Virus record (IMG/VR): IMGVR_UViG_3300042455_001086
Location: 1 to 64,000 of that record
Length of the DNA stretch: 64,000 nucleotides
Reading direction: 5' to 3' (one strand)
Below, piece by piece: positions 2,013-37,398 of this stretch. Position numbers and translations under genes: made by a program. Position 1 is the stretch's first letter; each line of letters opens with the position of its first letter. A model generated the notes under the pieces. It had not been told where the DNA came from, did no database searches, and saw only the letters and a list, made by a program, of their open reading frames with translations.

Positions 2013-2103
2013 TAATTTTAAAAATGATTTCTTTTGGATTAGCAAATACTTATAAGAAACAGATAAAAATTTAAATAGTGAATAAAAAATAAAAAAATAT
2101 AAA

Positions 2104-2721: not shown

Positions 2722-2726
2722 TAGTT

Positions 2727-3161: not shown

Positions 3162-3233
3162 TTTTTAAAATTTAATTTTTAGATTCAATTCTTTTGTTTA
3201 TATTTGTAGAATAAATCAATAAAAATATAAACT

Positions 3234-4556: not shown

Positions 4557-4578
4557 TATTTTATAAATATCTTAAAAT

Positions 4579-4788
4579 ATGGAAAACACAAAAACAAACT
4601 TTGGTAATTTATTTGGGACGATTGAACTTCTAAATGAGGAACATTTGGATGCAATCCTTACAACAATGGAAAAAGAAGCTGCAACATATTATTTAATAGA
4701 GTCCATTAAAGCAGCATATAGTAGAGGAGCATACACAATAGGTGAAACTGAAGTAATTTCAAAAGCAATTAGAGTGGTTTCAAAATAG
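4579..4788 (+). CDS. Hypothetical protein
   Basis: 69-aa ORF filling the gap between neighbours. Confidence 0.6.
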   Translation: MENTKTNFGNLFGTIELLNEEHLDAILTTMEKEAATYYLIESIKAAYSRGAYTIGETEVISKAIRVVSK

Positions 4789-4790
4789 AA

Positions 4791-6185: not shown

Positions 6186-7886
6186 TTATATATTTAAATC
6201 CAAAACATATTTAAATAACCCACAATTCCATATTTTATCAAATCCAAGTTCTTCAGTTAATTGTGATTCAGATTTGGTGAAATCAAGGTTGGGATATTTT
6301 TTTTTCAAATTATTTTTACCCATAGAAAACTTATGAAATCTTTTGTATTTATTAATTTTTGAACTATAGTAATAGTAAGATGGTTTAACAACTGATGTAA
6401 GTTTAAATCCCAATTTTGTATATAAATTATTTTCTGAACTAATTGTCCATCTTCTATCAGCAAAACTAATAATTTGTTTTGGGTTATGTTCTTTTATAAA
6501 TTTTTTAAGGATTTTTGAAGCCAAACCATTGACAATAAATCCAGAATTTGTTGAATATCTGGACAATTCAAACTCACCGGTTTGTGTTTTGGTCATATTT
6601 CTTTTTCTATTAAAGGTCATGACACCAACCATTGTATCCCCATAAAATGCACCATAAAATATATCAGATTTATCATTTCCTTGTATATGGAAATCATTCA
6701 AAAAATTGGTTTTTTGTTCCTTAGTTATATTTTTTATTTTTACTTGTCTCGCCCCAATTTTTATCCCATCATTTTTATTTAGAATATGTTTGATTTTATT
6801 TTTGACAAGTTCTTTATTTTTAACCCATTCATCTTCATAAATGTGATATAGTTTATAACCCATAAGAAAACAATCAATTGTTTTATTTAAATGATATTTT
6901 GAGTCTTTACCCATCTTTTCGGTATTGTAATATAAACCATCATATTCAAAACAAATTTTTAAACTAGGAATTACCAAATCAATTTCTTTACCTTCCAATA
7001 TTTTTCTATTTTTACCCTTAACAACATCAAACCCCAAGGTCTCCAAAAATTCTTTAATTTCGGATTCACCTTTTGATGTCCAAGTTGGTTCCAATGTTTG
7101 ATTTAATATTTTTGTGGACTCACTTAATTTTTTTGAGGTTGTTTCAGATACGATTTTTGAATTTGGAAATTTCATTTTATACTCCTCAATATCCATATTG
7201 TGTTTGTTTTTCAAATGTGTGTTTGTTATTGATTTCATTTTTTCATTACAAATTTGACAAACAACAATATTTTCACTTTTATTTAACTCACTCTTCTTAA
7301 CAAGAGTTGGATGAAACTTATATTCCAATGGAAATTCATCAAGATATTCTTTAATTGTAATATTATGTGTTTTAATGATATGTTGCTCAAAACAACCGGT
7401 TTTGTTGTTTATATCAGTTGTTTCCCATTTACATAACGAACATTTTCTTATTTCTTTTTTTTCCTTCTTTATTATATCAAAATATTCTTCATACCATTTT
7501 TTACCATATTGTATTTCATATTTTTTTCTTTGGTAATTATTAATGGGTATATTAACATCACCATAGTTCTCAATTATATGTTTTGTTAATTTACCAGATA
7601 AATTGTTTGGATCATTTATAGTTATTTTTGTTTTTTTACAGACAGCAACAAATTCATATTCATCTGTTTCATATTTTTTTGTCTTTACAGATTCGATTTC
7701 TAAAGTTTGGAAATCTTTTACTTGACCTCTTTTTTTGTTAATTTTAATATTGTTATTTTTTAAAATTTGTGAAATTTTTTTATGTCCTACTTTAAATTTT
7801 TCTGCTAATTTATGAGTACTGGGAATTTGATTTTGATATAAAGAAATGATTTCCAAAATATCATCATTAGATAGGATTGTTTTCAT
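6186..7886 (-). CDS. Free-standing putative homing endonuclease (zinc fingers plus PD-(D/E)XK-like domain)
   Basis: C2H2-like CxxC..H motifs; SKGESEI...EIDL...FEYDGLYY; C-terminal ELSRY..SFADRRW..IWNCG domain. Lies behind the capsid-gene terminator. Start taken at MKTILS. Confidence 0.65.
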   Translation of the reverse strand: MKTILSNDDILEIISLYQNQIPSTHKLAEKFKVGHKKISQILKNNNIKINKKRGQVKDFQTLEIESVKTKKYETDEYEFVAVCKKTKITINDPNNLSGKLTKHIIENYGDVNIPINNYQRKKYEIQYGKKWYEEYFDIIKKEKKEIRKCSLCKWETTDINNKTGCFEQHIIKTHNITIKEYLDEFPLEYKFHPTLVKKSELNKSENIVVCQICNEKMKSITNTHLKNKHNMDIEEYKMKFPNSKIVSETTSKKLSESTKILNQTLEPTWTSKGESEIKEFLETLGFDVVKGKNRKILEGKEIDLVIPSLKICFEYDGLYYNTEKMGKDSKYHLNKTIDCFLMGYKLYHIYEDEWVKNKELVKNKIKHILNKNDGIKIGARQVKIKNITKEQKTNFLNDFHIQGNDKSDIFYGAFYGDTMVGVMTFNRKRNMTKTQTGEFELSRYSTNSGFIVNGLASKILKKFIKEHNPKQIISFADRRWTISSENNLYTKLGFKLTSVVKPSYYYYSSKINKYKRFHKFSMGKNNLKKKYPNLDFTKSESQLTEELGFDKIWNCGLFKYVLDLNI

Positions 7887-7940
7887 ATGTATAATTATAT
7901 AAAAAATAAATTTATAATCCATTCAATTTTACACCAAATA

Positions 7941-7989: not shown

Positions 7990-9828
7990 TTATCTCAATT
8001 CTCTTAAATCAAATGTACGAACACCATCAACAGTGATACGAGCGTAGAAACGGTTATTAACCATTTTCTTCGCGTATCTTGTCATAATCCCTTTAATTGG
8101 TGTGAAATTAAATGGGTTATACATTGTAGGTGTTAATTGAAGAGGCACATACGGTGCGTAGATGTAACCTGTGTCAAGTAAAGATGTACCTTTGTGACCC
8201 AACAAGATTGTGTTTGGTGGGAAGTAAGGATCTCTATACACTTGGTAACGACCAGCTAATGTTCCAACTCTTTCAATACCCATATTGTATTGATCTTGCT
8301 CTGGAGATGCGTTAGATACGTGGAAGTATTCTAAATCATCAAAGATTGCAGAAACCTCAGAAGATACAACAATCCAGTTTGCACCACCTCTTAAAGTAGA
8401 TTTGTGGATTTGTGCAGACAATTGGTTGATTGCAGTAATCAATGTTTGGTTCCAATCTTTTTGAGTGTAAGAAGTTGTTAAGTTCAATCTTCTCCATCCG
8501 TTGTAATCCCATCTCAAAGTCCAAGCAGCACCTTTTCTAAGGTCTCTTAGGATTTCTCTGTCGATTTCAGCAGCAACTTGCTCAGAAAGTAAAGCAGTAA
8601 GTTCAGCTTCAGCGTCGATGTTATGGAATGCAGCAACATCTTGTGCAAGTTCTGGAGACCATTGAGCTCTTAATTTTCTTTCGGTTACAGAAACTGTTAC
8701 TGACTCAAGATCAAAAGATACTTCACCGATTTCATCTTGGAATTCCAAGTTTTCGTAAGTTCTATATACAGCAGTGAACGCATTTGCACCAAAACCTTCT
8801 TCATTTAATGTTGTTCCAGTATATCCATCAAGTGTGTCAGCACCACAAGTAGCACATGCTGGACAAGAAAGATCTACTTCTAAGTAGATACAACCTTCAG
8901 CATCACAGATGTCATAGTAAGAACCACCATTTCCACTATCAGGGAATGAAGTTGTTTTTTTAGAACCGTAATTTACGATTCCTTTACCATATTGTTGAGT
9001 AACAACTCTAAATAAAAGTGGTTGACCAACAACGATTTGACAAGCTTCGTCCTCAACACTAATTTCTGCGTTAGCGAAGATTTTAAGGTCAGAAAGGAAA
9101 GTTTCAGTATCAACTTCGTTTCCGTCAGGTCCGATTAATTTACCAGCACCTTCACCTAAAGTTCTAAAATTACAAAGTTGTAAAAGAACTTTTCTTACAT
9201 TAACTTTATCAAGGTAAGATTGAACAGCACCTGAAGTAGTTAAACCACCATCAGCACTCCACTTAATAACATCAGTAGCTACAGTAACTGCAGACCATTT
9301 TCCTTTTGAATAGTCAAATAAACCAGCAGGATCTAAACTAGCTTCAGCACCTTCATAAAATAAGTCATAAAGATTCTTTTTGTATGAACCAGCAGCAGGT
9401 GGATAACCAGCACCAAGAGCTTCTGGAATTTCATAATTGTTTGGTGAACCAATTGGTGGATAATGTGCGTTCCCAGCTTCAAGAGGATTATATCCTTGGA
9501 TACGAGGTACGAAGTAGAACAATTTACCGATAGGTAAGTTCATTGCTTGTACTGATACGATGTCGTTAGCTAACAATTTAGAGAAAACTCTTCTTACGAT
9601 AGGGAAAACAACTGTTTCAAAAGCTCCGTTTGAACCTTCTGAAGTTGCTTCGTTAATCAAGTGAGAAGCTTGGTTTTCATATAACTGTGCTACGTTCTCT
9701 TTTAGGTGGCCTTTAAGACCTTCTAGGAACCCTAATTTGTCCCATTTGTTAATTGTATCTTCTTTAATAACTTTAAGGTGTTTCAACCCAATGTTACCAA
9801 CAAGACCTGATTCTAATAATGCTCCCAT
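7990..9828 (-). CDS. Major capsid protein (T4 gp23-like)
   Basis: LYENQ, IVSVQAMNLP, RKLRAQWSPELAQD, EIDREI, YAPYVPL, GIMTRY motifs. Confidence 0.97.
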   Translation of the reverse strand: MGALLESGLVGNIGLKHLKVIKEDTINKWDKLGFLEGLKGHLKENVAQLYENQASHLINEATSEGSNGAFETVVFPIVRRVFSKLLANDIVSVQAMNLPIGKLFYFVPRIQGYNPLEAGNAHYPPIGSPNNYEIPEALGAGYPPAAGSYKKNLYDLFYEGAEASLDPAGLFDYSKGKWSAVTVATDVIKWSADGGLTTSGAVQSYLDKVNVRKVLLQLCNFRTLGEGAGKLIGPDGNEVDTETFLSDLKIFANAEISVEDEACQIVVGQPLLFRVVTQQYGKGIVNYGSKKTTSFPDSGNGGSYYDICDAEGCIYLEVDLSCPACATCGADTLDGYTGTTLNEEGFGANAFTAVYRTYENLEFQDEIGEVSFDLESVTVSVTERKLRAQWSPELAQDVAAFHNIDAEAELTALLSEQVAAEIDREILRDLRKGAAWTLRWDYNGWRRLNLTTSYTQKDWNQTLITAINQLSAQIHKSTLRGGANWIVVSSEVSAIFDDLEYFHVSNASPEQDQYNMGIERVGTLAGRYQVYRDPYFPPNTILLGHKGTSLLDTGYIYAPYVPLQLTPTMYNPFNFTPIKGIMTRYAKKMVNNRFYARITVDGVRTFDLRELR

Positions 9829-14399: not shown

Positions 14400-17300
14400 T
14401 TACCCATTTAGTAATTTGTCCAATTCTTTTTCAATATCACCCAATGAATTACGACCTTTTGATAGATCAATATATTCATCTTCGACCAAATCATTACTCT
14501 CAAGTAAGATGTTAAAGTTTCTTTTTTCTACACTATCCATCATTGGTTCTCCTCCTCCTGGTGGTGGGGGTGGTGCTCCTTCTCCTCCTGGTGGTGGGGG
14601 TGGTGCTCCTCCTGCTGTTACAGTTTCACCCGATACTGTTTTATATAATTTATCAATATTATCAAACATACCAGTTTTAGTAATTACGGTTGCGGTATTT
14701 GCTAGCTCAGCGGCAACAGCTCTTTCTAATCTTATTTGTTGTATTTCAAGTTTAATTTCTTCGTCGGAGAACCCAAATATGTGTTTTTTAGCCCAAGTTG
14801 CAGAAGTTGGTTGTAATGTGTTTGCAATTTCTGTAACCATATCTTTATACAATAAAACTTTTTCTTTCCAAACTGAAACCATAAGTAAATCAGCTTGTTT
14901 TGAGGGATTAGTAAGTCCTAGAGTAAAGTTGTGTAGTTCGTCTTCAAAACCTAATAAAAATAAATGAATGATTGCAATTTTATTCAGTTCGGCAATCATA
15001 CTTTTTTGTATTTTATTTATGGTTCTAGCAAAACGAATATCAAGTAATGATAGATTATCACCATTTCCAACCGGTTCTTCAAAACCTAAAAATGCTTTTG
15101 GTATTCTTAACGCTGTTACAAGTTTCTTTTGGATATATTCAATATCGGCAATCTCCGATAAGTTTTGAGCACCAGGTAATGTTTCAATTGGCATAGTTGC
15201 CGCTGGATCTCTAACAGGAATAAAATAATCTTGATCTACGGCCATTTGATTAAATCTTAAATCAACATTACCAGTTTTAGAATCAACAACCTGATCCCTT
15301 TTAAATTTGTTTGCAACTCTTTGTACATAAGCCTCAACATCCTTATCATCCATATTTCCAACAAACACTTTAAACACCCTTCTTTCTGGTGCTCTTGATG
15401 TTCTATATATTAACATCGCATCTTCAGCCAAAACAAGTTGTTTCCAAATTCTACGAGCTTTTTCAAGCATTGATGTTCCGTATGGAAGTTTTCTATCATC
15501 ACCTAATAATCTGAAATGAGCCATTTCCCAAGTGTTAAACTCCATGTCTTTGTTTTTCCAAACAAACTTTAAATTTTTATTTTTGAATTGAACTTCAGGA
15601 CCCAAAACCGAATTCATAGTTCTGGCTTCCATTCCTCTTTCTAGTCTTTCAATTTCTATGTTTGGTAGTTGAAGACAGCCGACAACACCTTTTTCTGGGT
15701 CTAATTTTAAATAAACGAAATTATCGCCATATTTACAGTTGGACAAAAACACACCGGTTTCTCTTGAATGATTACCATTTACATCAAAACCACAGACTGG
15801 GAAATTATGTCTATCATGTTCTCCGTTCGGACCAACAGCTTCTAAACAATAAACATCAGATGTTTCATCTAACTTAATTACTGAAACAACTTTATGGTTA
15901 ATAACTTTTACTTTAGTTTTTCCTTCAAAAATTGACTTAGCTTTAATATATTTTTCATCTAAAATAATTTCTGGTTTAATATCAGATATAAAATCAAAAT
16001 AATTTTTATTTGTTTTTCTTAAAATAACTTTTTTTAATGTTGTTGGATTAATTGATTTTGTGATATTTTTATTTAATTTATAATTTTCTTTGAATAGTTT
16101 GATAAACTCATTATCTGATTTGAGAATTTTTGACAACTCATTTACTCCCACATATGTCTCACAATTTTTAATTAAATTAGAAATATACGATAAACAAGTA
16201 TCATTAATTTCAATTGTCATCCCCTTTTTTGTTTTTTCTATAAAATTATTATCTCTCCAATGATTTAACATTTTATTTGAACGAATTATATTGTGTTTGA
16301 CATGTAATTCACTATTATTATAATTTTCAAAATATCTATTATAGACACCAGTCATTTCTTTGGATAGTCTTTGTCTTCGTTTTTCTGAACGCAAATACCT
16401 ATCAATTCCATCCATTCTTTTTTTAACAACTTCTGGCGAACCTAATATTTTATTAAAATGTTCCACATGTAATTTAAAATGATCCGAATGTCTCATTCTA
16501 CTCAAATTTTTTGGGTGATTATTTAGTTTGTTAAAATCAATGTGATGTGTGTCAAATTGCTCACCAATTATTTTTTCATTTTCCAAATCTCTAACACATT
16601 CATGTGAAACCATTGTGTGGGTAAATTTATATTTTCCTGTACTTGGGTTAAATACCTTTTCATAACCGACAATTCGGTCTTTTTTCTTTTCACTTTTTTT
16701 AGTGTAAAACGGCATTAATGATTCACCTTTAGTTAATTTATCAGCTCGTTTAAATGACCCATCCCTAAGCATATATTCGTGATCTGGTGTCGTGTCAATA
16801 TATGTACCATCATCTAGTGTGACCCTATACAACTCACTATTTTTTCTAGTTAGGTCACACCATATAATTTTACTAGGAACAATTGCTTTAGTTCCATCTT
16901 GTATTGAGTAAGACCAAATCTCCTCACCATTCTTAATCCTATCACTCAATTCTTTTATTGATACTTCTGTACCATCTAATAATGGTATCATAGTATTCTC
17001 TCTAATTGGAGTGTTTCTTACCCACATTGGTAAATTGATTGATATGTCCAAAACATTATTAAACAAATCAGTTAAAATTGATTTGATTCTCTTTGATTCT
17101 GAATATATCTGTAGAACATAACCATCTTGATTTGGTGTTGTAGATTCCTCAGAATAAATGTCTAAAGCCGTTGATATTTCAGGAGTATTATGTGAAAATA
17201 TAGTATCAGTTGCAAAGTTTTTATATCCTGGAACTGTTAAATCATAAACAGGTATGACACCATTTTCTTCTATTGATACTATTTTATGATTAAATACTAA

Positions 17301-18422
17301 TGTGTTTCCCTTACTTTTTACTGTTGCGTATATTGATTTTTTAATCCCGTATGCTTCTAAAAATGTGGACCAATCTTTATACCCACTATTTACGATTTCT
17401 CTTTGTATTTTTCTATATGATACATTTAATTTTTTTGCAGTACCCTTTAATGTTTTTATTTCTCTGGCGGTTTCTATGATACTATCAAAAGGTATTTTAA
17501 AGTAAGCTGGGTTATTAATACCACTTCTCTTACCATCCCAACTATGTTCACCTGTTCTTTTTGCAACTTCAGACATTTTTTGTCTATACTCTGGGTTTGT
17601 CCACAATTTTTCGTTGTTTAATCTTGCGTGATAAGCTCTATGTTCGGAAATATTCATTATTTGTAAATTTTCCGGTTTGTTATTTTTACCGTTAAAATCT
17701 ATATGATGAACTTCTTCATCTTTGTTAATTTTTTTACCATAAAACCATTCTGCAATTAAATTATGTTCCGAAACCCATCCATTATGACCTTCTTCTGAAT
17801 TACAAGTATATACCCAATTATATTTTTCATTATTGTAAAATGATTTTCTATAAAAAGGCATCATTGAGTCCCCTTCTTTTAAGTTCATTACACGTTCAAA
17901 TGAACCATCTCTTTTCATTAGTTGATGTTCCCATGTTGTTACAATATATGAACCGTCGTCAAATGTAATTTTATATGTCATTTCATCTCTCGTATAATGA
18001 GCATTTCTAGCTAAAGCCGGAACAACTTTTTTTAAATTGTGGTCATATGCGTACGTAATAAATTCATAATCTCTACCTTTTTCGGCTAATTCTTTAATTG
18101 TTATAAAACCATCTGTGGTTGCGATTTTAGTATCTCCCGCAATACAATATTCCATTGATTCATAATCATAAAAAGCCGCAATTCTATTAGGTTCATAATA
18201 CACCGCTTGAGCATATAAATTATTCTCAATTTTTTGCCATTGATTACTTAAAAATAAACTTTGTTGGTATTCTAATTTTTCTTTTTCGTATTCTTGTTTA
18301 TCTGTTGTTTTTAATAAAACCGTTTTATCCAATTTAACTGTTGGTTGGTCTAGATTCAAAAGTGAGTTGGGGCCAAATGTTTTGGATAATTTCTGCCATA
18401 TTGTCAAGTTATTTTTTTCCAT
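14400..18422 (-). CDS. Portal protein (T4 gp20-like) with two inteins
   Basis: LAEDAMLIYRTSRAPERRVF, DYFIPVR, IETLPG, DIEYIQKKL, DIRFAR. Confidence 0.95.
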   Translation of the reverse strand: MEKNNLTIWQKLSKTFGPNSLLNLDQPTVKLDKTVLLKTTDKQEYEKEKLEYQQSLFLSNQWQKIENNLYAQAVYYEPNRIAAFYDYESMEYCIAGDTKIATTDGFITIKELAEKGRDYEFITYAYDHNLKKVVPALARNAHYTRDEMTYKITFDDGSYIVTTWEHQLMKRDGSFERVMNLKEGDSMMPFYRKSFYNNEKYNWVYTCNSEEGHNGWVSEHNLIAEWFYGKKINKDEEVHHIDFNGKNNKPENLQIMNISEHRAYHARLNNEKLWTNPEYRQKMSEVAKRTGEHSWDGKRSGINNPAYFKIPFDSIIETAREIKTLKGTAKKLNVSYRKIQREIVNSGYKDWSTFLEAYGIKKSIYATVKSKGNTLVFNHKIVSIEENGVIPVYDLTVPGYKNFATDTIFSHNTPEISTALDIYSEESTTPNQDGYVLQIYSESKRIKSILTDLFNNVLDISINLPMWVRNTPIRENTMIPLLDGTEVSIKELSDRIKNGEEIWSYSIQDGTKAIVPSKIIWCDLTRKNSELYRVTLDDGTYIDTTPDHEYMLRDGSFKRADKLTKGESLMPFYTKKSEKKKDRIVGYEKVFNPSTGKYKFTHTMVSHECVRDLENEKIIGEQFDTHHIDFNKLNNHPKNLSRMRHSDHFKLHVEHFNKILGSPEVVKKRMDGIDRYLRSEKRRQRLSKEMTGVYNRYFENYNNSELHVKHNIIRSNKMLNHWRDNNFIEKTKKGMTIEINDTCLSYISNLIKNCETYVGVNELSKILKSDNEFIKLFKENYKLNKNITKSINPTTLKKVILRKTNKNYFDFISDIKPEIILDEKYIKAKSIFEGKTKVKVINHKVVSVIKLDETSDVYCLEAVGPNGEHDRHNFPVCGFDVNGNHSRETGVFLSNCKYGDNFVYLKLDPEKGVVGCLQLPNIEIERLERGMEARTMNSVLGPEVQFKNKNLKFVWKNKDMEFNTWEMAHFRLLGDDRKLPYGTSMLEKARRIWKQLVLAEDAMLIYRTSRAPERRVFKVFVGNMDDKDVEAYVQRVANKFKRDQVVDSKTGNVDLRFNQMAVDQDYFIPVRDPAATMPIETLPGAQNLSEIADIEYIQKKLVTALRIPKAFLGFEEPVGNGDNLSLLDIRFARTINKIQKSMIAELNKIAIIHLFLLGFEDELHNFTLGLTNPSKQADLLMVSVWKEKVLLYKDMVTEIANTLQPTSATWAKKHIFGFSDEEIKLEIQQIRLERAVAAELANTATVITKTGMFDNIDKLYKTVSGETVTAGGAPPPPPGGEGAPPPPPGGGEPMMDSVEKRNFNILLESNDLVEDEYIDLSKGRNSLGDIEKELDKLLNG
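15738..17009 (-). mobile_element. Intein 2 in portal (424 aa, Pro1, class-3-like, HNH endonuclease)
   Basis: WVRNT|PIRENTMIP ... TTPDH ... DVYCLE ... FLSN|CKYGD; THHIDFNKLNN. Confidence 0.85.
17187..18146 (-). mobile_element. Intein 1 in portal (320 aa, HNH endonuclease)
   Basis: Y|CIAGDTKI ... VYDLTV..NF...SHN|T; EVHHIDFNGKNN. Confidence 0.92.
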
Positions 18423-19486: not shown

Positions 19487-22400
19487 CTATCTTTTACCAA
19501 ATAACCAACCATATTCCATATAATCTCTTCTTGACGGTCCGGAATTATTTCTATTAAATCTATCGTTATTAACTCCCATATTTGGTATTACAGGATCAAA
19601 ATGAATTTGTTTTCCAATATTATCATTATTTGCAACAGTCCAAGATTCAATCATTATTTTTGTTTTTTCTGTAACTTTTTCAAGTTTTGAGAATGATGAC
19701 TCACCAACATATATTGCCATTGATATACCCATTATAAGATCATCGTGTTGTCCTTTTTGGTGATCTGGCCTTCCGTTTATATAGACAAACGTATTCATCT
19801 CATTATACAAACGAACACTTCTGATTTTAAATTTATGTCTTACATATTCCTCAAATGCCGCAATAATTTGAACTCTTTTGTTATTAAAATTTATTCCTGG
19901 TATTTTATCTGCCGATGTTTTATTAACAGCCCAAATATTCATAGAATCAACACCATCAATATAAAGGTTTTTATATCCAAGTTCTTGCATTTTTCTTACA
20001 GTTGTGATTCCCATACCACCGGTGATATCCACAACACAAAATGCGTTATACATTATCCCCCATTTATACGCAATTTCAGCTAAAGCATCAGGAGGGATCT
20101 TTCCAACATATTCTAATACTTGTTCTCTTTCATCAAAATCAATAATCTGGAGTGAGGAAAAGTCCTCACTATCACCACGAGAAACATCACAGTTGTGTGT
20201 GGTAATGTGGTGACACATAAAAGTATGTGTTTCACACTCAAAGTTATACACATTTCCAGTAAATTGATTCTTATCAATATCTTTAATCCTAAAGTAAATA
20301 TATTTATTATCCTTACTAAAATGACACCCACTTATAATCCTTTTATTATTAATACTAAAATCACTTAACTCAAATCTATTTAATTTGGGGTCAAGTTTAT
20401 CATTATTCAAAATTTTAATTAAATCCAAACTATCTTGATTTGATAATGATAAACTGTATGTTTCTTTATGTTTTATAGTTTTACCCTTTATTTGTGATTG
20501 TTTTTCATTTCGTAACTTACTTAACGATGAAACAACACCAAATGAAAACAATATGTCTTGGATTGACTCCAATAGTTCCAAATTTATACTAACAAATGTT
20601 ATTTTAGAATTTACTTTACCTTTTTTTTTGGTTTTCAACCAACAACCGTCACTAGCTAAATAACCTTTTATCAATTCAATTTTATATTCTTTAGGTATAA
20701 ATTTAACCCATTCTGATATTTTTTTACCATATGAATATTTACCAAAATTTTCTAATATAAAATGATATAGAAATTTTGAATTAAACACTAATTCATAACT
20801 ATTCTGATCTTTATCAAAAAATGACGGACTTCTGTCAAATAATCTTTTTATTATATTTTTTGTTTTATCCAAATAATACAAATCTTTAGAATCAAAACAG
20901 ATATTTATTGTAAAACTATGACCAACATCATACATACAACCATCACCTAACCACATACCTATAAACCACCAAAAATCTTTATCCTTTAATGGTGATTTAA
21001 TATTAAAATCGGTTCTAATATTTTCAGAAATAACCCATTTATCCTCTAATATATTTTCAATTTCTTTATTATAAATATTCGGAGTTTTAACCCAATCACC
21101 AACCTCAACTTCCTCAACCCTTGTGTATTTAAAATTAAAATCCCAATATCTTTCATTAAAATCTAATGAATTATGTTTTTTACTATAATTACGTTTTAAA
21201 ACTGGATTACTTATTAACAACGGATGTTCTTTTGTGAATGTCGTTTTTCTAAAAGTGTTGTCGACCTTAATTGTAAAAATATCCTCATCAACGACTGGGT
21301 ATATTTGTTTATTATAAATCTTAACATATTCACCATTTTCACTAACTAACTTATCATCTAATGTAACATCTTCAATATTTTTTAACCCACAATCAGTTAA
21401 TACTTTTTCACTAGGTGGCAAACAACCTAAAATGTATTTATGTCCCGGTACTGGTTCTTTCCAAATCCAAAGAGCATTACCCATCATTTTTGTTGGAGCT
21501 TCTTGTATTGTGTTTTGTTTTATGTAATCAAGTTGTTTTCCGTCAAATACATTATCTCCAGACCCTAAAAATTCACAATTTAACTCTTGGTTAATTTTTC
21601 TTTTATCGTATTTTAATTTTTTAACCATCTTCTCATACCAAGTAGAACATGGTTTATATCCTTGTGAAAAATATTCTCTTATTTTCTCATAATCCCTATT
21701 ATATGGATCCGAGTCCTCAAATGATATATTCCCAGAATGATCTCTTTCATCTTTATTAAGTAGATAATCAACCATATCATCAGTTGGAACTAAATATAAA
21801 TCTTTTGAATATCTTGGGTCTTTCCACCAAAACATTTCAGAAATTTTAAAATTGTTAATTCCTTTATTTGCCTGATTATATATTTCATAATAAATTGGAT
21901 CATAACCGTTTGGTGTTGAAACAACAATAACTTTACCACCGGTAGATAGGGACGCCATACAAGCTGCCCAGAAATCACCATCAGCTTCGATAAACGCCGC
22001 CTCATCAAATACAAGTATTGTTGGTGTATAACCCCTCAACGCATCTCGTGATGTTGCAACAGCTTTAACTTCACAACCATTTGTTAGTTTATAGTGTCTT
22101 TGTGAGTTTTTATCAGCTGAAAATCCGGTTCCAACCCAAGAAGGCCATTGTTCTACAAAGGCTCTAATTTTATTTGCCATCTCCATTGATGTATCAAGTT
22201 TGTTGGCAATAATCAATATTTTTTCTGGTCGTTCTTTTTTTGCAAAAACCAGTCTTTTTGATATCCAAGCAGCGGTTACTGTTGATACACCAGCCTGACG
22301 ATATTTTAAAGCTATATTTTCTTCAAAATCTTCATAATCTTTAAGTAGTGATATTTGATCTGGAAATAACTCTAATGGTACATATTTGGAAACGGTATTA

Positions 22401-22492
22401 TCATATGTTTGTAAATATGTTCTTAAAGCATATGGAGTGTCTTTCATACATCTCACATACTCCAACATCACCTGTTCTTTTGTTAAACCCAT
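19487..22492 (-). CDS. Terminase large subunit (gp17-like) with an intein
   Basis: KYRQAGVST Walker A, LVFDEAAF Walker B, STPNG, QELNCEF, G|CDVSRG..DFS, HDDLIM. Confidence 0.96.
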   Translation of the reverse strand: MGLTKEQVMLEYVRCMKDTPYALRTYLQTYDNTVSKYVPLELFPDQISLLKDYEDFEENIALKYRQAGVSTVTAAWISKRLVFAKKERPEKILIIANKLDTSMEMANKIRAFVEQWPSWVGTGFSADKNSQRHYKLTNGCEVKAVATSRDALRGYTPTILVFDEAAFIEADGDFWAACMASLSTGGKVIVVSTPNGYDPIYYEIYNQANKGINNFKISEMFWWKDPRYSKDLYLVPTDDMVDYLLNKDERDHSGNISFEDSDPYNRDYEKIREYFSQGYKPCSTWYEKMVKKLKYDKRKINQELNCEFLGSGDNVFDGKQLDYIKQNTIQEAPTKMMGNALWIWKEPVPGHKYILGCLPPSEKVLTDCGLKNIEDVTLDDKLVSENGEYVKIYNKQIYPVVDEDIFTIKVDNTFRKTTFTKEHPLLISNPVLKRNYSKKHNSLDFNERYWDFNFKYTRVEEVEVGDWVKTPNIYNKEIENILEDKWVISENIRTDFNIKSPLKDKDFWWFIGMWLGDGCMYDVGHSFTINICFDSKDLYYLDKTKNIIKRLFDRSPSFFDKDQNSYELVFNSKFLYHFILENFGKYSYGKKISEWVKFIPKEYKIELIKGYLASDGCWLKTKKKGKVNSKITFVSINLELLESIQDILFSFGVVSSLSKLRNEKQSQIKGKTIKHKETYSLSLSNQDSLDLIKILNNDKLDPKLNRFELSDFSINNKRIISGCHFSKDNKYIYFRIKDIDKNQFTGNVYNFECETHTFMCHHITTHNCDVSRGDSEDFSSLQIIDFDEREQVLEYVGKIPPDALAEIAYKWGIMYNAFCVVDITGGMGITTVRKMQELGYKNLYIDGVDSMNIWAVNKTSADKIPGINFNNKRVQIIAAFEEYVRHKFKIRSVRLYNEMNTFVYINGRPDHQKGQHDDLIMGISMAIYVGESSFSKLEKVTEKTKIMIESWTVANNDNIGKQIHFDPVIPNMGVNNDRFNRNNSGPSRRDYMEYGWLFGKR
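20192..21424 (-). mobile_element. LAGLIDADG intein in the terminase nuclease domain (411 aa)
   Basis: G|CLPPSEKV..TKEHP..IGMWLGDG..IKGYLASDG..VYNFE..THN|C. Confidence 0.93.
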
Positions 22493-30752: not shown

Positions 30753-31265
30753 ATGAAATCATTGACAAGTCTTTTTGTAATTTTTATTTCTGTCATTTGT
30801 TTTACCCAAACAAAAAATAGTAAATCAGATGAAATGTTTATCGCCAGAAATAAAAAAGAATACAACAAAACTAATTTTGATAGTTTGAATAATTGTTTAG
30901 TTGGTTTAATTAACGATTATAGAGTTAAAAATAAATTAAACAAATTGTCTGTTGATACTAATTTGATTCACTATTCCAAAAATTGGGCAAAAGTTTTGTG
31001 TGATAGAAATACACTTGTTCATTCAGATTTTAATGGAACAAACATAATTGGTGAAAACATTTATGGACTTTTTACTTACGGTACATTTATTTGTAGTGTT
31101 GAATATTTCAATAAACAGCCCCAAATAATTTTTGATTCTTGGAGGACATCAATTGTTGGTCACAATGAAAATATGTTAAATGTTAAAGCAACTAAAATTG
31201 GTTTGGTTATTTACACAGAATATAACACCAAATTTAAATTAAGAGCTGTGATGGTTGTTGAATAA
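30753..31265 (+). CDS. Secreted CAP/SCP-domain protein
   Basis: Signal peptide; INDYR...L..L..D, HS, GENI, W..S.GHNENML. Confidence 0.8.
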   Translation: MKSLTSLFVIFISVICFTQTKNSKSDEMFIARNKKEYNKTNFDSLNNCLVGLINDYRVKNKLNKLSVDTNLIHYSKNWAKVLCDRNTLVHSDFNGTNIIGENIYGLFTYGTFICSVEYFNKQPQIIFDSWRTSIVGHNENMLNVKATKIGLVIYTEYNTKFKLRAVMVVE

Positions 31266-31292
31266 AAAGACCCCCAAAAAATGGGGGTTTTT

Positions 31293-31661
31293 TTATTTTA
31301 GGGAGTTAATTTTATCTCTCACTTCTATAGCCCTCTCAAAGTTTTGTGTTTTAATACAATCTTCAAGTTCTTTATTGAGCTCACTTATTTTTTCTTTGTT
31401 TTCTTCTAGATTTTTTATTCTATCTCTTAACTCCACAGCTTCCTCAAAATTTTGTTCCTCAACCGCCATATCCAATTTTTGTTTTAATAGTGTTATTTCA
31501 TCGGATTTGGTTAAATTACCTCTTTTATTTGTAATGTAGGTAAATGAAATTGACCCATCTGGTGAATGATAAGTTTTTTTATCCCAATCATTAGTATTCC
31601 CAAATAATGGATCCGAATTAAAAAATTCATTAAATAATCTTTCTAAATTTCTGTTAAACAT
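31293..31661 (-). CDS. UVR (UvrB/C motif) coiled-coil protein, McsA-like Clp partner
   Basis: Two repeats of AVEEQNFEEAVELRDRI; divergent from the clp gene. Confidence 0.8.
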   Translation of the reverse strand: MFNRNLERLFNEFFNSDPLFGNTNDWDKKTYHSPDGSISFTYITNKRGNLTKSDEITLLKQKLDMAVEEQNFEEAVELRDRIKNLEENKEKISELNKELEDCIKTQNFERAIEVRDKINSLK

Positions 31662-31822
31662 TTTTTTATATTTTAAAGGTTTATTTTGTAATTTTTTTTA
31701 ACCAATTTTGTTCCAAACAAAAAAGTATGACAAAATGTCAGTATAAAATTTTAGTATATGACAAAAAGACAAATATTGACAACAAATCTATTTATATCTA
31801 AAATTAGATAAAACTTTTAGAT

Positions 31823-32110
31823 ATGGCAATAGAATTTGTAGATGATGGAGACAAAAACAAAAGAAAAGGTGATGGTAGCACACCTATTTTAGACAATTTC
31901 AGCAAAGATTTAATTAAAGCTGCTGAACAAGGAAAATTGGATCCTGTTATTGGGAGGCAAAAAGAAGTGTTAAGAATTGCACAGATATTATCAAGGAGAA
32001 AAAAAAATAATCCAATTATAATTGGTGAACCCGGATGTGTATTAGGAGACACTTGGATTGAGGTTGAGAAAGTATCTAATGTTGATACTCACAATTTTAA
32101 AAAGTTGTGA
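31823..32110 (+). CDS. ClpC-like ATPase N-fragment fused to a 24-aa N-intein
   Basis: [28 protein letters not shown]|CVLGDTWI...stop. Confidence 0.9.
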
Positions 32111-32126
32111 TATTTATTATTAGGTA

Positions 32127-33335
32127 TTGGTATATCCCAACACCTGGATTATTATGTTTATCAAGAAAAACGGTAAGAATTTAATTGAAATTAATACAGT
32201 CATTGAGTTTCAAAATTTTATATTAGATAAAAAATTTTATAAATATTTTATAAAATTTAGGGATTCAGACATCCAAAAAGTTAATGACTTAATTAATCAG
32301 ACTGAGTTTTTAAATTATAAAAAAATAAAACCAGTGTTAAGGTCGGTATTAAACTATCCTGAAAGTATCTATAATAAAGATTTTTTATTAAGTATGGGTT
32401 GGGAATTGGATATGATTGATATTTTTATATCCGAAAAACAAAGTAAAAATTCTAATATTTTAAAACAAAAGAAACAATCAAACCCAGAAAAATATAAAAG
32501 TAGTGAAACTACAAATATTGAATATTGGTTAAATAAGGGATATAACCTAAATGATGCTAAAATTAAATTGAGTGAGCGTCAATCAACTTTTAGTTTAAAA
32601 AAATGTATAGATAAATATGGTGAAGTTGTTGGGACTGAAAAATTCTTAAATAGACAAAAAAAATGGATAAACACATTAAAAAATAAAGAAAATTTTCAAG
32701 AAGTGCAGTTGAAAAAAAATGTATTTAAATATGATGTGAAAGAAACAAAATTGTTATTACAACACGCAAACTATAAAGAAAAAACAAAAGGAATTATTAT
32801 GGGTTGTTCTACCTATAATACAATTAATGAATTTATTGATTGTATCATTAAAAATGATGACATAAAAAAATATTCGGATTTGACACAGTATGTTAATAGT
32901 AAAGTCATTTGTAATATATTTAAAACAACACCAACAATCATAAAAAATTTATTTTATGAGAAAATAAATCTAAATCAAAATAGACAATATTATGGTATAT
33001 CTGTATATCATAATGGTATTAGATATAAAAGTGTTGGTGAATATAGAGTTGCGTTATTTTTGGAAGAAAATAAAATTAATTTCGACTACGAAAAAAATTA
33101 TCCAAACTCAAATTTAAAGTGTGATTTTTATCTAAAAGAGAAAGATACATACATTGAATTATATGGACTATTAAATAAGAAAAATTTAAACAAATTAGAT
33201 GATAATCAACAGATATATAAACAAAAAGTTGATTTTAAAAATCAATTTTGTATAGACAATAATATAAAATTGATTTATGATTTTGACTATAACTTATTAA
33301 TTAATAAAATACAAAATTATTATTATGAAAATTAA
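32127..33335 (+). CDS. Free-standing endonuclease between the split-intein halves
   Basis: EYWLNKGY / CIDKYGE repeats; KSVGEY..CDFYL....IELYG PD-(D/E)XK motif. Start may be ATG 32154. Confidence 0.7.
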   Translation: MVYPNTWIIMFIKKNGKNLIEINTVIEFQNFILDKKFYKYFIKFRDSDIQKVNDLINQTEFLNYKKIKPVLRSVLNYPESIYNKDFLLSMGWELDMIDIFISEKQSKNSNILKQKKQSNPEKYKSSETTNIEYWLNKGYNLNDAKIKLSERQSTFSLKKCIDKYGEVVGTEKFLNRQKKWINTLKNKENFQEVQLKKNVFKYDVKETKLLLQHANYKEKTKGIIMGCSTYNTINEFIDCIIKNDDIKKYSDLTQYVNSKVICNIFKTTPTIIKNLFYEKINLNQNRQYYGISVYHNGIRYKSVGEYRVALFLEENKINFDYEKNYPNSNLKCDFYLKEKDTYIELYGLLNKKNLNKLDDNQQIYKQKVDFKNQFCIDNNIKLIYDFDYNLLINKIQNYYYEN

Positions 33336-35574
33336 AATTAAAGATTTTTTCGAGTTAATTGAAAAAGAAGGGGGGACATATAAAATTAAAACTCCATCAG
33401 GATATAAATTAATTGGTAATTTATATGAAAAACAAAATAAACTTTGTTATGAAATAAAATTATCTAACGGTAATACTTTATCGGGTTCTGAAGATCATTT
33501 AGTTGAGGTTGATTCAACAACAACTAATGAAAATTCAGAATTGATAAATGAATCATTTTGGGTTAAATTAAAAAATATCAATTTGGGCGACTTTATTTTT
33601 TGTGAAGATAATAATTTATACGATGTTATTGAAAAAAATGAAATTGGTATTCATAATACATATGATCTTGAAGTTCTTGATAATGAGCGTAAATATATTT
33701 CAAACGGTATTGTGTCACACAATTGTGGTAAAACGGCCATTGTTGAAGGGTTAGCAATGATGATACATTCTGGTGAATGCCCAAAAAATTTAGCTGATAA
33801 AAGAATTGTATCATTAGATATTAACTCACTTGTTGCTGGAACAAAATATAGAGGACAATTTGAAGAAAGAATGAAGGTTATAATTGAAGAATTACAATCA
33901 AACCCAAATATTATAATCTTTATTGATGAAATTCATACAATGGTTGGTGCTGGTAATAGTTCTGGATCATTAGACGCTTCAAATATTCTTAAACCTTCAC
34001 TATCAAGGGGTGAAATTCAATGTATTGGTGCTACAACACTTGACGAATACAGAAAACATTTTGAAAAGGATGGTGCGTTAGAAAGAAGATTCCAAAAGAT
34101 AATTGTTGACCCTTCATCAAAAGAAGAGACATTTCAAATTTTAAAACAGAGTAAGGAAAAATATGAGGAACACCACAAAGTAAATTACACAGATGAATCA
34201 CTTTGGTTATGTGTTGAGTTAGCGGATAGATATATTACGGATCGTGAATTTCCAGATAAGGCTTTTGATATTTTAGATGAGATTGGTTCTCGTATGCAAA
34301 TTGATATTAAACTTCCGGAACATATAGAAAAATTAAAACAAGAAGCCGCAGATATTAAACTAGAAAAAGTTGATGTTATTAAAAAACAAAAATATGAATT
34401 AGCTGCCGAACTTCGTGATAGAGAAAAAAATATTTTATCTAAACTTGAGGAAGAAAAGAAAAAATTTGAGGACGAACTCAAAAATAGTAAAAGAGGTATT
34501 CCGGAGGACTTAATTTACGAAGTCGTTTCAAATATGACAAAAATTCCAGTTAGTAAGATTAATATAGACGAAAAAAATTCACTTGTTAATTTGGAAGACT
34601 CACTTAATGGTTCTGTTATTGGTCAAGAAGAAGCGGTTAAAAAGATTTCAAAAGCAATTAGACGAAATAGAGTAGGTATTAAGGATCCAAATAGACCAAT
34701 TGGTTCATTTATCTTCCTAGGATCTACTGGTGTGGGAAAAACATTTTTGGCGAAAAAGTTGGCAAAAGAAATTTTTGGGAGTAAAGATAGTTTAATTAGA
34801 GTAGATATGTCTGAATATCAAGAAAAACACACAATTTCACGACTAATCGGCTCACCTCCTGGTTATGTTAATTCAGACGAAGGTGGTCAATTAACAGAGC
34901 AAGTTAAAAATAAACCATATTCCGTGATATTATTTGATGAAATAGAAAAAGCACACAAAGACATTTTTTCAACACTTTTGCAAGTATTAGATGACGGACA
35001 TATTACTGATAGTCTTGGTAGAAAAATTAATTTTAAAAATTGTTTAATTATAATGACATCAAATATTGGTGTTAAAAAATTGCAAGATTTTGGTAGTGGT
35101 GTTGGTTTTAAAACATCAAATAATAGTGAAGCTGTTCAAGAAGAATATAAACGAGATGTTCTAAAGAAAGAACTAAGTAAGTTTTTTGCACCAGAATTTT
35201 TAAATAGAATTGATGATGTTGTTGTCTTTAATTCATTAAAAAAAGAACAAATCAATAAAATTGTTAAACTTGAAATTGATAAACTAATAAAACGGTTAGA
35301 TTCAATGAAGTATAAAATTTCGTATGAAAATTCAGTAATTGATTTAATTGCCAAAGTTGGGTTTGATGAACAATATGGTGCAAGACCAATAAAGAGAGCA
35401 ATCCAGGATAAAATTGAAGATTTAATTTCAGAAAAAATATTATTGAATGAAGTTATTGAAGAAAAGGAATATGTGTTATTTGTCAAAGGAGAAGGTGATG
35501 GCCAGACAATAGAAATTGAAGATAGATCAAAACCAGAACCGAAAAAAAGAGGTAGAAAGAAAAAGGAGGATTAA
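33325..35574 (+). CDS. 133-aa C-intein fused to the ClpC-like AAA+ ATPase C-fragment
   Basis: SEDH..TYDLEV..YISNGIVSHN|CGKTAIVEG; AGTKYRGQFEE, FIDEIH, UVR motif, GSTGVGKT, LFDEIEKAH, GARP. Confidence 0.92.
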   Translation: MKIKIKDFFELIEKEGGTYKIKTPSGYKLIGNLYEKQNKLCYEIKLSNGNTLSGSEDHLVEVDSTTTNENSELINESFWVKLKNINLGDFIFCEDNNLYDVIEKNEIGIHNTYDLEVLDNERKYISNGIVSHNCGKTAIVEGLAMMIHSGECPKNLADKRIVSLDINSLVAGTKYRGQFEERMKVIIEELQSNPNIIIFIDEIHTMVGAGNSSGSLDASNILKPSLSRGEIQCIGATTLDEYRKHFEKDGALERRFQKIIVDPSSKEETFQILKQSKEKYEEHHKVNYTDESLWLCVELADRYITDREFPDKAFDILDEIGSRMQIDIKLPEHIEKLKQEAADIKLEKVDVIKKQKYELAAELRDREKNILSKLEEEKKKFEDELKNSKRGIPEDLIYEVVSNMTKIPVSKINIDEKNSLVNLEDSLNGSVIGQEEAVKKISKAIRRNRVGIKDPNRPIGSFIFLGSTGVGKTFLAKKLAKEIFGSKDSLIRVDMSEYQEKHTISRLIGSPPGYVNSDEGGQLTEQVKNKPYSVILFDEIEKAHKDIFSTLLQVLDDGHITDSLGRKINFKNCLIIMTSNIGVKKLQDFGSGVGFKTSNNSEAVQEEYKRDVLKKELSKFFAPEFLNRIDDVVVFNSLKKEQINKIVKLEIDKLIKRLDSMKYKISYENSVIDLIAKVGFDEQYGARPIKRAIQDKIEDLISEKILLNEVIEEKEYVLFVKGEGDGQTIEIEDRSKPEPKKRGRKKKED

Positions 35575-36616
35575 AAACCCTCCTTTTTTTTATTAAAAAC
35601 CAACATAATCTAAATTATCAAATATTTATATAATATAAATTATATTATAGGATATGTTGGTTAATAAAGAACAATATTATAGTTATACTGAATTAAAAGA
35701 TTTAATTAAAAATCAAAACATAACAACAAAAGAATCATATATTTCTAATTATAAAAATCTTAAGATTTATGGTAAAAAGGCACCAATAAATCCAATAACA
35801 TTTTACGGTAAAAATATTTGTAAAAATTGGTCTGAATTTTTAGGAAAACCAATATATAAAAAAAATAAATATGGTGTGTACTACACATACGAAAAATGTA
35901 AAAAACAAATTAGACTTCTAAATATTAAAAGTAAAAATGATTATTATAATCAAATAAATAAAATTATGTCTGAAGAAACTGGGATACCATATAATCCGGT
36001 CTCAATATATAAATCAGAATGGGAAGGTTGGGGTATTTTTTTAGGAACTAACCGAATACAAGATAATCTTAAAAAATACAAACCATTTGATGAGGCTCGT
36101 GATTGGGCTCGTAGTTTAAATCTAAAAATGGGTAAAGAATGGACAAAATTAGAACTAACAAAATTACCAACCAACATACCAAAAAAACCAGAAAAAACAT
36201 ATAAAGATAAAGGATGGATTGATTATTACGATTGGCTGGGGATTGACAAAAGAACTAAAATTAGTTATGGTGAAAAGGTAATTTTTGATTTTCTAACTAA
36301 AAACAAAATAAAATTCCAGTACGACAAGTCTCTTTTAAATTGTAGAGATAAAAATAAACTTCGTTTTGATTTCTATCTCCCAGAAAAAAATATATGTATT
36401 GAATTTGATGGGATACAACATTTTAAACCTATTTCAATATTTGGTGGTGAAAGTGAGTTTGAAAAAGTTAAAATAAGAGATAGAATAAAAAATGATTTTT
36501 GTGAATTAAACAGTATAAAATTAATTAGAGTTAATTATTCACAATCAAATGACGAAATAATTAAAATATTGGGCTGTTTATAAAAAGGAGGATTAAAAAC
36601 CCTCCTTTTTTATTAA
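35560..36616. repeat. Duplicated ~30-bp bidirectional terminator flanking an endonuclease gene
   Basis: aaaaaggaggattaaaaaccctcctttttt starts at 35560 and at 36582. Confidence 0.85.
35654..36583 (+). CDS. Putative homing endonuclease (repeat domain plus Vsr/DUF559-like nuclease)
   Basis: IP.NP..Y..W.GW..FLG repeats; SYGE..FDFYL..IEFDGIQH..D..KN.FC. Confidence 0.75.
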   Translation: MLVNKEQYYSYTELKDLIKNQNITTKESYISNYKNLKIYGKKAPINPITFYGKNICKNWSEFLGKPIYKKNKYGVYYTYEKCKKQIRLLNIKSKNDYYNQINKIMSEETGIPYNPVSIYKSEWEGWGIFLGTNRIQDNLKKYKPFDEARDWARSLNLKMGKEWTKLELTKLPTNIPKKPEKTYKDKGWIDYYDWLGIDKRTKISYGEKVIFDFLTKNKIKFQYDKSLLNCRDKNKLRFDFYLPEKNICIEFDGIQHFKPISIFGGESEFEKVKIRDRIKNDFCELNSIKLIRVNYSQSNDEIIKILGCL

Positions 36617-37398
36617 TGTTTGGTATAACCTAGTTCTTCAATCATCAGCTTACCCACCTTAATTCCGTTGTATGTATCCTCAACAACAACATATTCATTT
36701 TTTGTGTGGTAGTTGTAATAACCAATTGATATGTTAAAACAAGATAAATCAAAATTTTTATTTAATGGATAAATGTCCGTATATGGATGACTATGATATT
36801 TTGTGTCACTTGGGAAATGTTCTGTAATCAAACGACCACCAACCTTAAAAAATTCAGAATTTCTATTAAACATAGGTTTGCTCATCAGATATTCGGAAAT
36901 CATATTATTCTCCGGGGCATCAAATTGAATCACATAACCAACATTCTTGAAAAATTCTGGGTCGGCGTTAAATGAACCTTTACAACCGGTTTCTTCAGCC
37001 ACAAAAAATGCTACCTTCAAGTTTGGCAATTCTTTTAGAAGTTCAAGACAAGCATAGACACCACACTTATCATCACCACCAATTCCGGTTGGGTTTCCTT
37101 TATCATTATACGCTTTAAGTGCCAGTTTTATTTCTTTCTGTGCGTTTGGTAATTGTTCCTCAACAACATTTATTGTGTCAATATTATGAACCGTATCCGT
37201 ATGTGCAACAACACAAGGAAAATAAGAAATATCTTCATCAGTTTGTTTTGTTGCATAAACATTATTAAACTGATCCACATAAAATGGTATATTGTTTTCG
37301 CTCAACCAATTACAAATGAATTCAACCATTAAACCTTCTTGATAAGTTTTTGTGGGAATTGATAATACTTCTTTTAATAATTCAAAATTTCTTTCCAT
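36613..37398 (-). CDS. Zn peptidase (M20/M28 family)
   Basis: AHTDTV, GGDDKCG, EETGC.GS, D, YH. Confidence 0.85.
   Translation of the reverse strand: MERNFELLKEVLSIPTKTYQEGLMVEFICNWLSENNIPFYVDQFNNVYATKQTDEDISYFPCVVAHTDTVHNIDTINVVEEQLPNAQKEIKLALKAYNDKGNPTGIGGDDKCGVYACLELLKELPNLKVAFFVAEETGCKGSFNADPEFFKNVGYVIQFDAPENNMISEYLMSKPMFNRNSEFFKVGGRLITEHFPSDTKYHSHPYTDIYPLNKNFDLSCFNISIGYYNYHTKNEYVVVEDTYNGIKVGKLMIEELGYTKH

Follow-up and report, generated by a model that had tools for sequence, protein, structure and literature searches.

How can one ATPase be produced from a gene that is cut in two within its ATP-binding motif, with another gene lying in the cut? The question is raised by nucleotides (nt) 31823-35574 of the stretch analysed here (the window, 64,000 nt), which corresponds to positions 1-64000 of the 257-kb IMG/VR contig IMGVR_UViG_3300042455_001086 and is identical (100%, equal coordinates) to locus L006 of our comparison. 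A first, sequence-only reading of this DNA had proposed that a fractured ClpC-like gene carries an atypically split intein in its Walker A motif: a 24-residue (aa) N-intein directly after GEPG and ended by a stop codon, then a free-standing endonuclease gene and a 133-aa C-intein ending SHN/CGKT (the slash marks a splice junction). Each of these parts was found where it had been placed, and the middle gene is nuclease-like. Very probably, the element is a functional trans-splicing split intein in the Walker A motif of the first AAA+ module (D1) of a ClpC-like ATPase, with a mobile nuclease gene between its pieces. The locus contains three open reading frames (ORFs), and its parts are as follows:

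31823-32110, plus strand: ORF1 (N-extein and N-intein), 95 aa, TGA stop
31823-32035, plus strand: N-extein of the ClpC-like ATPase, 71 aa, with GEPG, the first half of the D1 Walker A motif, at its end
32036-32110, plus strand: N-intein, 24 aa, and TGA (coding 32036-32107; Cys1 codon 32036-32038)
32111-32144, plus strand: TATTTAT box (32111-32117) and hairpin (32123-32144), between the stop of the N-half and the endonuclease start
32154-33335, plus strand: ORF2, putative free-standing homing endonuclease, 393 aa, with helical N-terminal modules and a C-terminal PD-(D/E)xK-like nuclease domain
33325-35574, plus strand: ORF3 (C-intein and C-extein), 749 aa
33325-33723, plus strand: C-intein, 133 aa (MKIKIKDFF...NGIVSHN), with blocks B, F and G
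33724-35574, plus strand: C-extein, 616 aa, starting with Cys+1 (CGKT; Cys+1 codon 33724-33726) and containing the rest of D1, a UVR-like middle region, the second module D2 (intact GSTGVGKT) and D2-small

The three ORFs occupy three different reading frames, and the 3′ end of ORF2 overlaps the first 11 nt of ORF3. A mechanical ORF listing places ORF2 at 32127-33335 with a TTG start; the true start is probably the ATG at 32154, which gives 393 aa, and gene callers chose likewise for P0345.

The exteins are colinear with intein-less homologues, which bears out the fractured ClpC-like gene. Uninterrupted homologues of 701 and 707 aa, with GEPGVGKS, are found in the huge phages LR745206 and LR756502. 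In a blastn alignment with the uninterrupted gene, query positions 877-4289 (3413 nt) pair with record positions 423337-425061 (1725 nt), and the difference of 1688 nt is exactly the length of the insert (32036-33723, 1688 bp). At the protein level, residues 20-71 of the N-extein align to residues 40-91 of the 701-aa homologue (71% identity) and residue 1 of the C-extein aligns to residue 92 (59% identity over 574 aa); the exteins abut at residues 91 and 92 of the homologue with no residue lost. The profile phrog_4871 (ATP-dependent protease, E = 2e-211) is likewise matched contiguously, by ORF1 at positions 163-224 and by ORF3 at positions 224-742. Pfam recognizes AAA, AAA_lid_9, AAA_2 (E = 4e-66) and ClpB_D2-small in the ATPase, corresponding to two AAA+ modules. 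It found no Clp_N domain, and the 71-aa N-extein is without any Pfam match; since the homologues are short as well, the protein is ClpC-like rather than a canonical ClpC. It is a predicted Hsp100/Clp class I-type unfoldase, and the spliced product would comprise 71 + 616 = 687 aa.

The intein motifs are intact on both sides of the cut. We aligned 20 N-halves and 18 C-halves of diverged relatives (64-80% identity). In the N-halves, Cys1, directly after GEPG, is invariant, block A is invariant or nearly so, and the tail residues Ser14, His19 and Asn20 are conserved too. In the C-halves, the invariant residues are S55-x-x-H58 of block B (here S55-E-D-H58), D114 of block F, H132-N133 of block G and Cys+1 (C134), and the junction of the window reads YISNGIVSHN/CGKTAIVEGLA. 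A profile of the intein family retrieved only inteins from the Protein Data Bank (PDB), with VidaL far in first place at E = 6.8e-21, so the likeness is not due to chance. With the C-intein as a single sequence, phmmer also ranked VidaL best, and CatC second.

Just one version of the same intein as an unbroken chain was found, in the contiguous relative P0108 (829 aa; loci L003, L004 and L028; 3783-6272 in L003), of which residues 63-236 were modelled with AlphaFold2 (AF2). The model is a HINT domain (predicted local distance difference test (pLDDT) 88, predicted template-modelling score (pTM) 0.82). Its top Foldseek match is VidaL (6vgv; template-modelling score (TM) 0.90 normalized by target, root-mean-square deviation 2.2 Å), and its top 50 matches are all inteins or related intein-like (BIL) HINT domains. 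The split forms are broken after strand 17-22 (LIEIEK), and strand 27-32 and helix-α1 (residues 33-43, KIKIKDFFDLVEK) fall in the C-intein, which aligns with VidaL from its residue 2. On this model, the break is at the S1 position, after the first β-strands and before helix-α1. S1 is the position described for VidaL and PolB16, and S2 that for AceL-TerL and GOS-TerL (PMC13014065). Judged by its motifs and alignments, the element is a class 1 intein with a natural, atypical split at S1. The atypical split proposed at the outset is thus upheld at the sequence level, with intact and invariant catalytic blocks and homology to VidaL, which has the same S1 site. The conserved tail of the N-intein (Ser14, His19 and Asn20) is absent from P0108; P0263, a contiguous relative in the wider family, keeps a segment, KVSEANLHNV, that resembles it, which marks the tail as ancestral intein sequence and not junk.

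The window is a metagenome-assembled contig, and the split might be an artefact of assembly or a chimera. However, contigs from four independent runs (different studies; lake or pond metagenomes) span 31200-33867 with zero differences, crossing ORF1, the endonuclease gene and the C-intein junction. Four IMG/VR contigs from different samples (L006-L009) are identical here, and 20 runs hold the stretch. Among protein clusters, hundreds (90-113 aa) match the N-half and 139 match the C-intein region. The probability of an artefact is negligible, and we regard this explanation as already refuted.

Is the split state itself stable, or does it follow the nuclease gene? We compared 31 IMG/VR loci, some of which are the same phage sampled more than once. 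Across them, the N-intein is 23-26 aa long (24 in nearly all, 23 and 26 in one each) and the C-intein 133 aa. The gap between the halves is ~1205-1217 bp in 16 of the 31 loci and 9-32 bp in 11, which are endonuclease-free. In three more (L025, L030 and L031) it is 74-363 bp, and the 3′ end of the endonuclease gene and/or its 5′ hairpin remains; one locus has the contiguous form. L013 carries a decaying, frameshifted copy of the endonuclease gene (3769-4985; 97 aa + 313 aa in two frames). Alleles with and without endonuclease are interleaved in the C-extein tree, and the window extein is 90% identical to that of the endonuclease-free L005. The contiguous form nests among split forms (SH-aLRT 90 in the extein tree), which suggests, with moderate tree support, that it is a secondary re-fusion, possibly after endonuclease loss. 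Since the two ORFs stay separate in many relatives in which no more than 9-32 bp divides the halves, the endonuclease is dispensable for the split state. That the gene stays split whether the endonuclease is intact, frameshifted, a remnant or absent argues for genuine protein trans-splicing: the gene product would depend on it, and the endonuclease would be a dispensable passenger.

The same alleles might be read as decay, in which the endonuclease broke an intein-containing clpC-like gene whose pieces are no longer joined and whose C-half works alone or not at all. Homing endonuclease insertions are able to inactivate genes, and the endonuclease itself degenerates in relatives, as seen from the frameshift in L013 and the remnants in L025, L030 and L031. 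The pieces around it, however, are maintained. Median ratios of nonsynonymous to synonymous substitution (dN/dS, Nei-Gojobori) are 0.18 for the N-intein, 0.21 for the C-intein, 0.06 and 0.09 for the exteins and 0.36 for the endonuclease, values that are rough because dS is near saturation. By these estimates both intein pieces, like the exteins, are under purifying selection (0.06-0.21). All catalytic residues are invariant across many diverged relatives, the N-half is found in hundreds of clusters, and the two-ORF layout outlasts the loss of the endonuclease with exact fragment lengths. Furthermore, a C-half without GEPG would have no D1 P-loop. Decay is therefore quite improbable.

A contiguous, cis-splicing intein would result if the halves were joined before or during translation, by an endonuclease-bearing intron, frameshifting or bypassing, readthrough or an alternative code. 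Endonuclease genes are frequent in group I introns, and in two endonuclease-free loci (L026 and L005) the spacer, of 9 or 12 nt, is in frame. On the other hand, an Rfam scan of 31000-36800 at E <= 1 found no intron, giving only weak, irrelevant leader and small RNA matches, and the ORFs of the window lie in three different frames. Spacers in the endonuclease-free loci are 9, 10, 12, 14, 27 or 32 nt long, do not keep the frame and in some cases contain several stop codons. Because N-halves end in TGA, TAA or TAG, one reassigned codon cannot explain the pattern, and every C-half has its own conserved ATG. Joining before the protein stage is highly improbable. Frameshift, intron and assembly error were the routes by which the sequence-only reading had expected it might fail; all were examined and none was found, the region being free of Rfam introns and the assembly reproducible.

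We infer the following course for protein trans-splicing. A 95-aa N-precursor (71 + 24 aa) and a 749-aa C-precursor (133 + 616 aa) would be made by separate translation. The short N-intein would then associate with the C-intein and supply the first β-strands, completing its HINT fold. Cys1, the Ser/His of block B, the Asp of block F, the His-Asn of block G and Cys+1 would perform standard protein trans-splicing, and the outcome would be the 687-aa ATPase with its P-loop restored as GEPG-CGKT. Before splicing, the halves would be unable to form the D1 ATP site. The middle gene would be a selfish element that comes and goes, with the split state independent of it.

The two pieces could also form a conditional switch, in which they associate but mainly cleave, or in which splicing is gated by redox (via Cys1/Cys+1) or by infection stage, regulating the ATPase post-translationally. 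In favour of this, the P-loop position of the intein means that no unspliced protein can be active, Cys1 and Cys+1 each carry a thiol, and the N-intein tail is conserved without a known splicing role yet absent from contiguous P0108. Nothing in the sequence demands regulation, however, and selfish inteins usually prefer conserved sites such as a P-loop. That many unrelated ATPases carry related inteins at this motif agrees better with the logic of homing sites than with regulation specific to one host, and we consider a switch very unlikely.

Several points nevertheless weigh against trans-splicing with a mobile nuclease as set out above. The modelled chain is the contiguous P0108 (64% identity in the C-intein part) rather than the two-piece complex of the window itself, and the dN/dS values carry the roughness already noted. 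Cys+1 stands where GEPGVGKT usually has Val, so that activity of the spliced P-loop is assumed. Joining at the RNA level is excluded by sequence logic only, and residues missing from the EDxHD motif make nuclease activity of the middle protein uncertain.

The middle gene has more than 100 homologues of ~390 aa, the distant ones with Pfam DUF559/MTES_1575 or named very-short-patch-repair endonuclease. Pfam gave no match for ORF1 or ORF2 and nothing meaningful for all members of the ORF2 alignment, and phmmer of ORF2 against PDB gave no match. The ORF2 family profile, in turn, matches T7 endonuclease I (E = 1.5e-3), with Glu, Asp and Glu of the PD-(D/E)xK site aligned. The AF2 model of ORF2 (pLDDT 88) has its best fold matches, through the C-terminal domain, in I-Bth0305I (TM 0.64 normalized by target) and Vsr (3r3p, 1vsr, 1cw0), at weak E-values of 0.16-1.5. 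These Vsr-like (EDxHD) enzymes are also free-standing or intron-encoded phage endonucleases. The ORF2 family conserves E296, D324, E335 (in E335-x-x-G338), G338 and K362, but differs from them in that it keeps an Asp and a Glu without the His and second Asp of EDxHD (E-L-Y-G versus E-F-D-G-x-x-H), and its profile is nearer to T7 endonuclease I. ORF2 is a putative Vsr-related homing endonuclease of PD-(D/E)xK type. Among closely related alleles the gene is present or absent at an identical site, and this polymorphism at one precise position demonstrates its mobility.

Upstream of ORF2, the TATTTAT box is invariant in 10 aligned loci (nine with the endonuclease gene, and the remnant locus L025), and the consensus hairpin has seven pairs, three of them with compensatory changes. 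Box and hairpin are candidate control elements of the endonuclease gene, comparable to the 5′ hairpins and control elements borne by endonuclease genes of other fractured genes (PMC2677866). Immediately 3′ of the ClpC-like gene is a second free-standing nuclease gene (35654-36583, plus strand, 309 aa). Its product has the signature E-F-D-G-x-x-H known from Vsr-like homing endonucleases, matches PHROG families whose annotation is homing or intron-encoded nuclease, and aligns with the C-terminal 100 aa of ORF2 at 39% identity. The gene is missing at this position in the relative carrying P0027, where a peptidase gene comes directly next.

Only a handful of natural atypically split inteins with short N-fragments are known, namely VidaL, PolB16, AceL-TerL and GOS-TerL. 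VidaL (PDB 6vgv/6vgw) is the best match to the ClpC-like intein in both sequence and structure, and shares with it the class 1 HINT fold, a GIVSH(N) block G, the S1 split and a very short N-intein paired with a long C-intein. The PDB chain of VidaL ends ...SHA-SGK, and its alignment suggests a P-loop-like insertion site there too. The two differ in the +1 residue (apparently Ser in VidaL, Cys here) and in the host protein, and their identity is only ~21-30%. Splicing was measured for VidaL and is predicted for the ClpC-like intein. In addition, the VidaL N-intein has 16 aa (PMC13014065) against 24 aa here, and the ~8 extra residues are the conserved Ser/His/Asn tail.

PolB16 OarG, with a 15-aa N-intein and a 168-aa C-intein (PMC10189870), also has a natural S1 split. 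It differs in having Ser1 and Ser+1 and no catalytic cysteine, lies in a PolB DNA polymerase, comes from a sheep gut metagenome, and is a weaker structural match (8cpn, rank 32). Phage inteins with a natural atypical split and an N-intein of 25-37 aa also include AceL-TerL, GOS-TerL and the engineered Cat intein, but these are split at S2, after helix-α1 and one element later (PMC13014065), and their host is the terminase large subunit. The view that very short N-inteins are rare therefore stands, but they are already known, and 24 aa lies within the natural range of 15-37 aa set by PolB16, VidaL, AceL-TerL and GOS-TerL (PMC13014065, PMC10189870).

The gene had also been taken for a known kind of fractured gene, and its layout is indeed that of Dassa et al. 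2009 (PMC2677866). Their genes (gp41-1, NrdJ-1, IMPDH-1 and others) are likewise of phage origin and consist of an N-extein/N-intein, a free-standing, Vsr-related endonuclease with a hairpin 5′ of it, and a C-intein/C-extein. They are split, with one exception, at the canonical endonuclease insertion site, and their hosts are enzymes of DNA synthesis and repair, as opposed to the Clp/Hsp100-type unfoldase here; the ClpC-like family shows every stage by which the endonuclease is gained and lost. The suspicion that a Clp host is unusual agrees with the literature searched, in which no Clp/Hsp100 gene with a split intein was described and nothing relevant was found on split inteins in ClpC, ClpB, Hsp100 or jumbo phages; most subscription-journal papers lay outside that search, and an earlier description is possible. 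The Clp/Hsp100-type host protein thus appears to be new, whereas the fractured layout, the S1 split type and short N-inteins are known.

How far does this intein family reach? Among protein-cluster representatives, 104 matched the C-intein at E <= 1e-3. Most of the stronger ones (roughly E < 1e-10) align from within their first ~30 residues, the mark of C-halves of other split genes. Ten of the matches were examined with Pfam, and eight of them have AAA+ or clamp-loader-like domains. In the sequences inspected the intein ends are SHN/[CTS]GK[TS] or SHN/SCKT, and further contiguous relatives, P0253 and P0263, were found. By contrast, a scan of 185,579 bacterial and archaeal species-representative genomes found no family member and a single extein-only match; the family appears restricted to viral and metagenomic contigs. 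Within the rest of the window, a hidden Markov model (HMM) scan of the six-frame translation found no further member.

Some relatives are split at a second Walker A motif. In L005, L030 and L035 and in P0003, P0027 and P0040, a middle piece ends in GSTGVGK/C followed by ~30 aa. In L030 (5001-9003) and L035 (5001-9031), the gene is in three pieces, with a second endonuclease gene and then a third piece whose C-intein of ~148 aa ends SHN/T. L005 (462-1976) likewise has a three-piece gene, its D2 Walker A motif being the site of another atypically split intein. In the window, the D2 site is intact (GSTGVGKT) and free of a second intein. The second C-intein shares 31% identity with the first and starts beyond helix-α1; the second intein therefore looks S2-like, nearer to the AceL-TerL/GOS-TerL type.

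A wider reading, which we rate as evenly poised, takes the window as representative of a large clade of VidaL-type S1-split inteins in the Walker A loops of many AAA+/P-loop proteins (ClpC-like D1, other AAA and clamp-loader-like) of freshwater jumbo phages. The clade would comprise hundreds of variants and every stage of the endonuclease cycle in one gene family. Two-intein relatives would provide a natural orthogonal pair, and the N-intein tail (Ser14, His19 and Asn20) may have a new fragment-capture role. No description of such a clade was found in the literature searched, within the limits given above.

Because a short N-intein can be synthesized chemically, such inteins are in demand for protein semisynthesis and for editing proteins in live cells. 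The locus adds a Cys1/Cys+1 member with a 24-aa N-intein, its hundreds of natural variants are useful for consensus design, and the second, differently split intein in the same gene of relatives is a candidate partner for an orthogonal pair. The series of contiguous genes and of split genes with intact, decaying or lost endonuclease lets the fractured-gene model of split-intein origin and persistence be tested on real alleles. For phage biology, a Clp-type unfoldase of jumbo phages would need post-translational assembly. Specialists would hardly find the existence of such a locus surprising; what it offers is an addition to the protein-engineering toolbox and an unusually complete natural series of endonuclease gain and loss.

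The genes of the window include a T4-type major capsid protein, portal and large terminase, its GC content is ~30%, and the nearest relatives of the capsid protein (~41-45% identity) are in uncultured huge phages, Flavobacterium phages and a Microcystis phage. At least 20 DNA runs from lakes, ponds and fresh water, belonging to many studies, contain the stretch, so it comes from a T4-like jumbo phage that is widespread in fresh water.

Two joints in the read mapping, 32028>33830 and 32035>33963, were considered as an intein-less allele and rejected; they differ from the expected 32035>33724, and their sides are only 24-30 nt at a likeness threshold of 90%. Their likeliest source is Clp genes from other organisms, and this also accounts for the spikes in depth over conserved AAA motifs.

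Two further features flank the ClpC-like gene:

31776-31804, plus strand: promoter-like TTGACA-17-TAAAAT, 19 nt before the ORF1 start codon; at 11/12, the region's best match to the consensus
35565-35591, plus strand: terminator-like hairpin GGAGG/CCTCC with a 9-nt loop, followed by a T run and overlapping the ORF3 stop

Promoter-like matches are no more numerous in the region than in shuffled sequence, so the first is only a candidate promoter, although a TTGACA is also found upstream in the relative L005. The putative terminator was read by eye, the hairpin scan of the region having been limited to loops of 8 nt and hence not reporting it. Upstream of the promoter-like site is a perfect inverted repeat, TGACAAAATGTCA (31728-31740), and the identical 13-mer precedes the N-half in L005; it may be an operator. 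Divergent from the ClpC-like gene is a gene for a 122-aa protein with two UvrB/UvrC (UVR) motifs (31293-31661, minus strand), which has the same place in the contig of a relative and could encode a partner or adaptor of the ATPase.

Elsewhere in the window, the Gp23-type capsid protein (7990-9828, minus strand) is long at 612 aa; only ~56% of it aligns to known phage capsids, in two pieces, and no intein motifs were seen in its additional, partly Cys-rich stretch at residues ~100-340. Beside it, a 577-aa ORF (6186-7922, minus strand) with a ROS/MucR zinc-finger region and a weak match to the restriction-endonuclease-like MTES_1575 may be a mobile nuclease. In the large terminase (19487-22492, minus strand, 1001 aa), residues 602-668 form a LAGLIDADG domain, presumably part of an intein that carries a homing endonuclease. 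The T4-type portal gene (14400-18422, minus strand, 1340 aa) appears to contain two inteins. The first spans residues ~93 to 412 (CIAGDTK...TIFSHN/T) and contains an HNH domain (Pfam). The second, from residue ~478 to 860, ends ...VFLSN/C, starts without Cys or Ser, has VYCLE as block F and resembles class 3 inteins.

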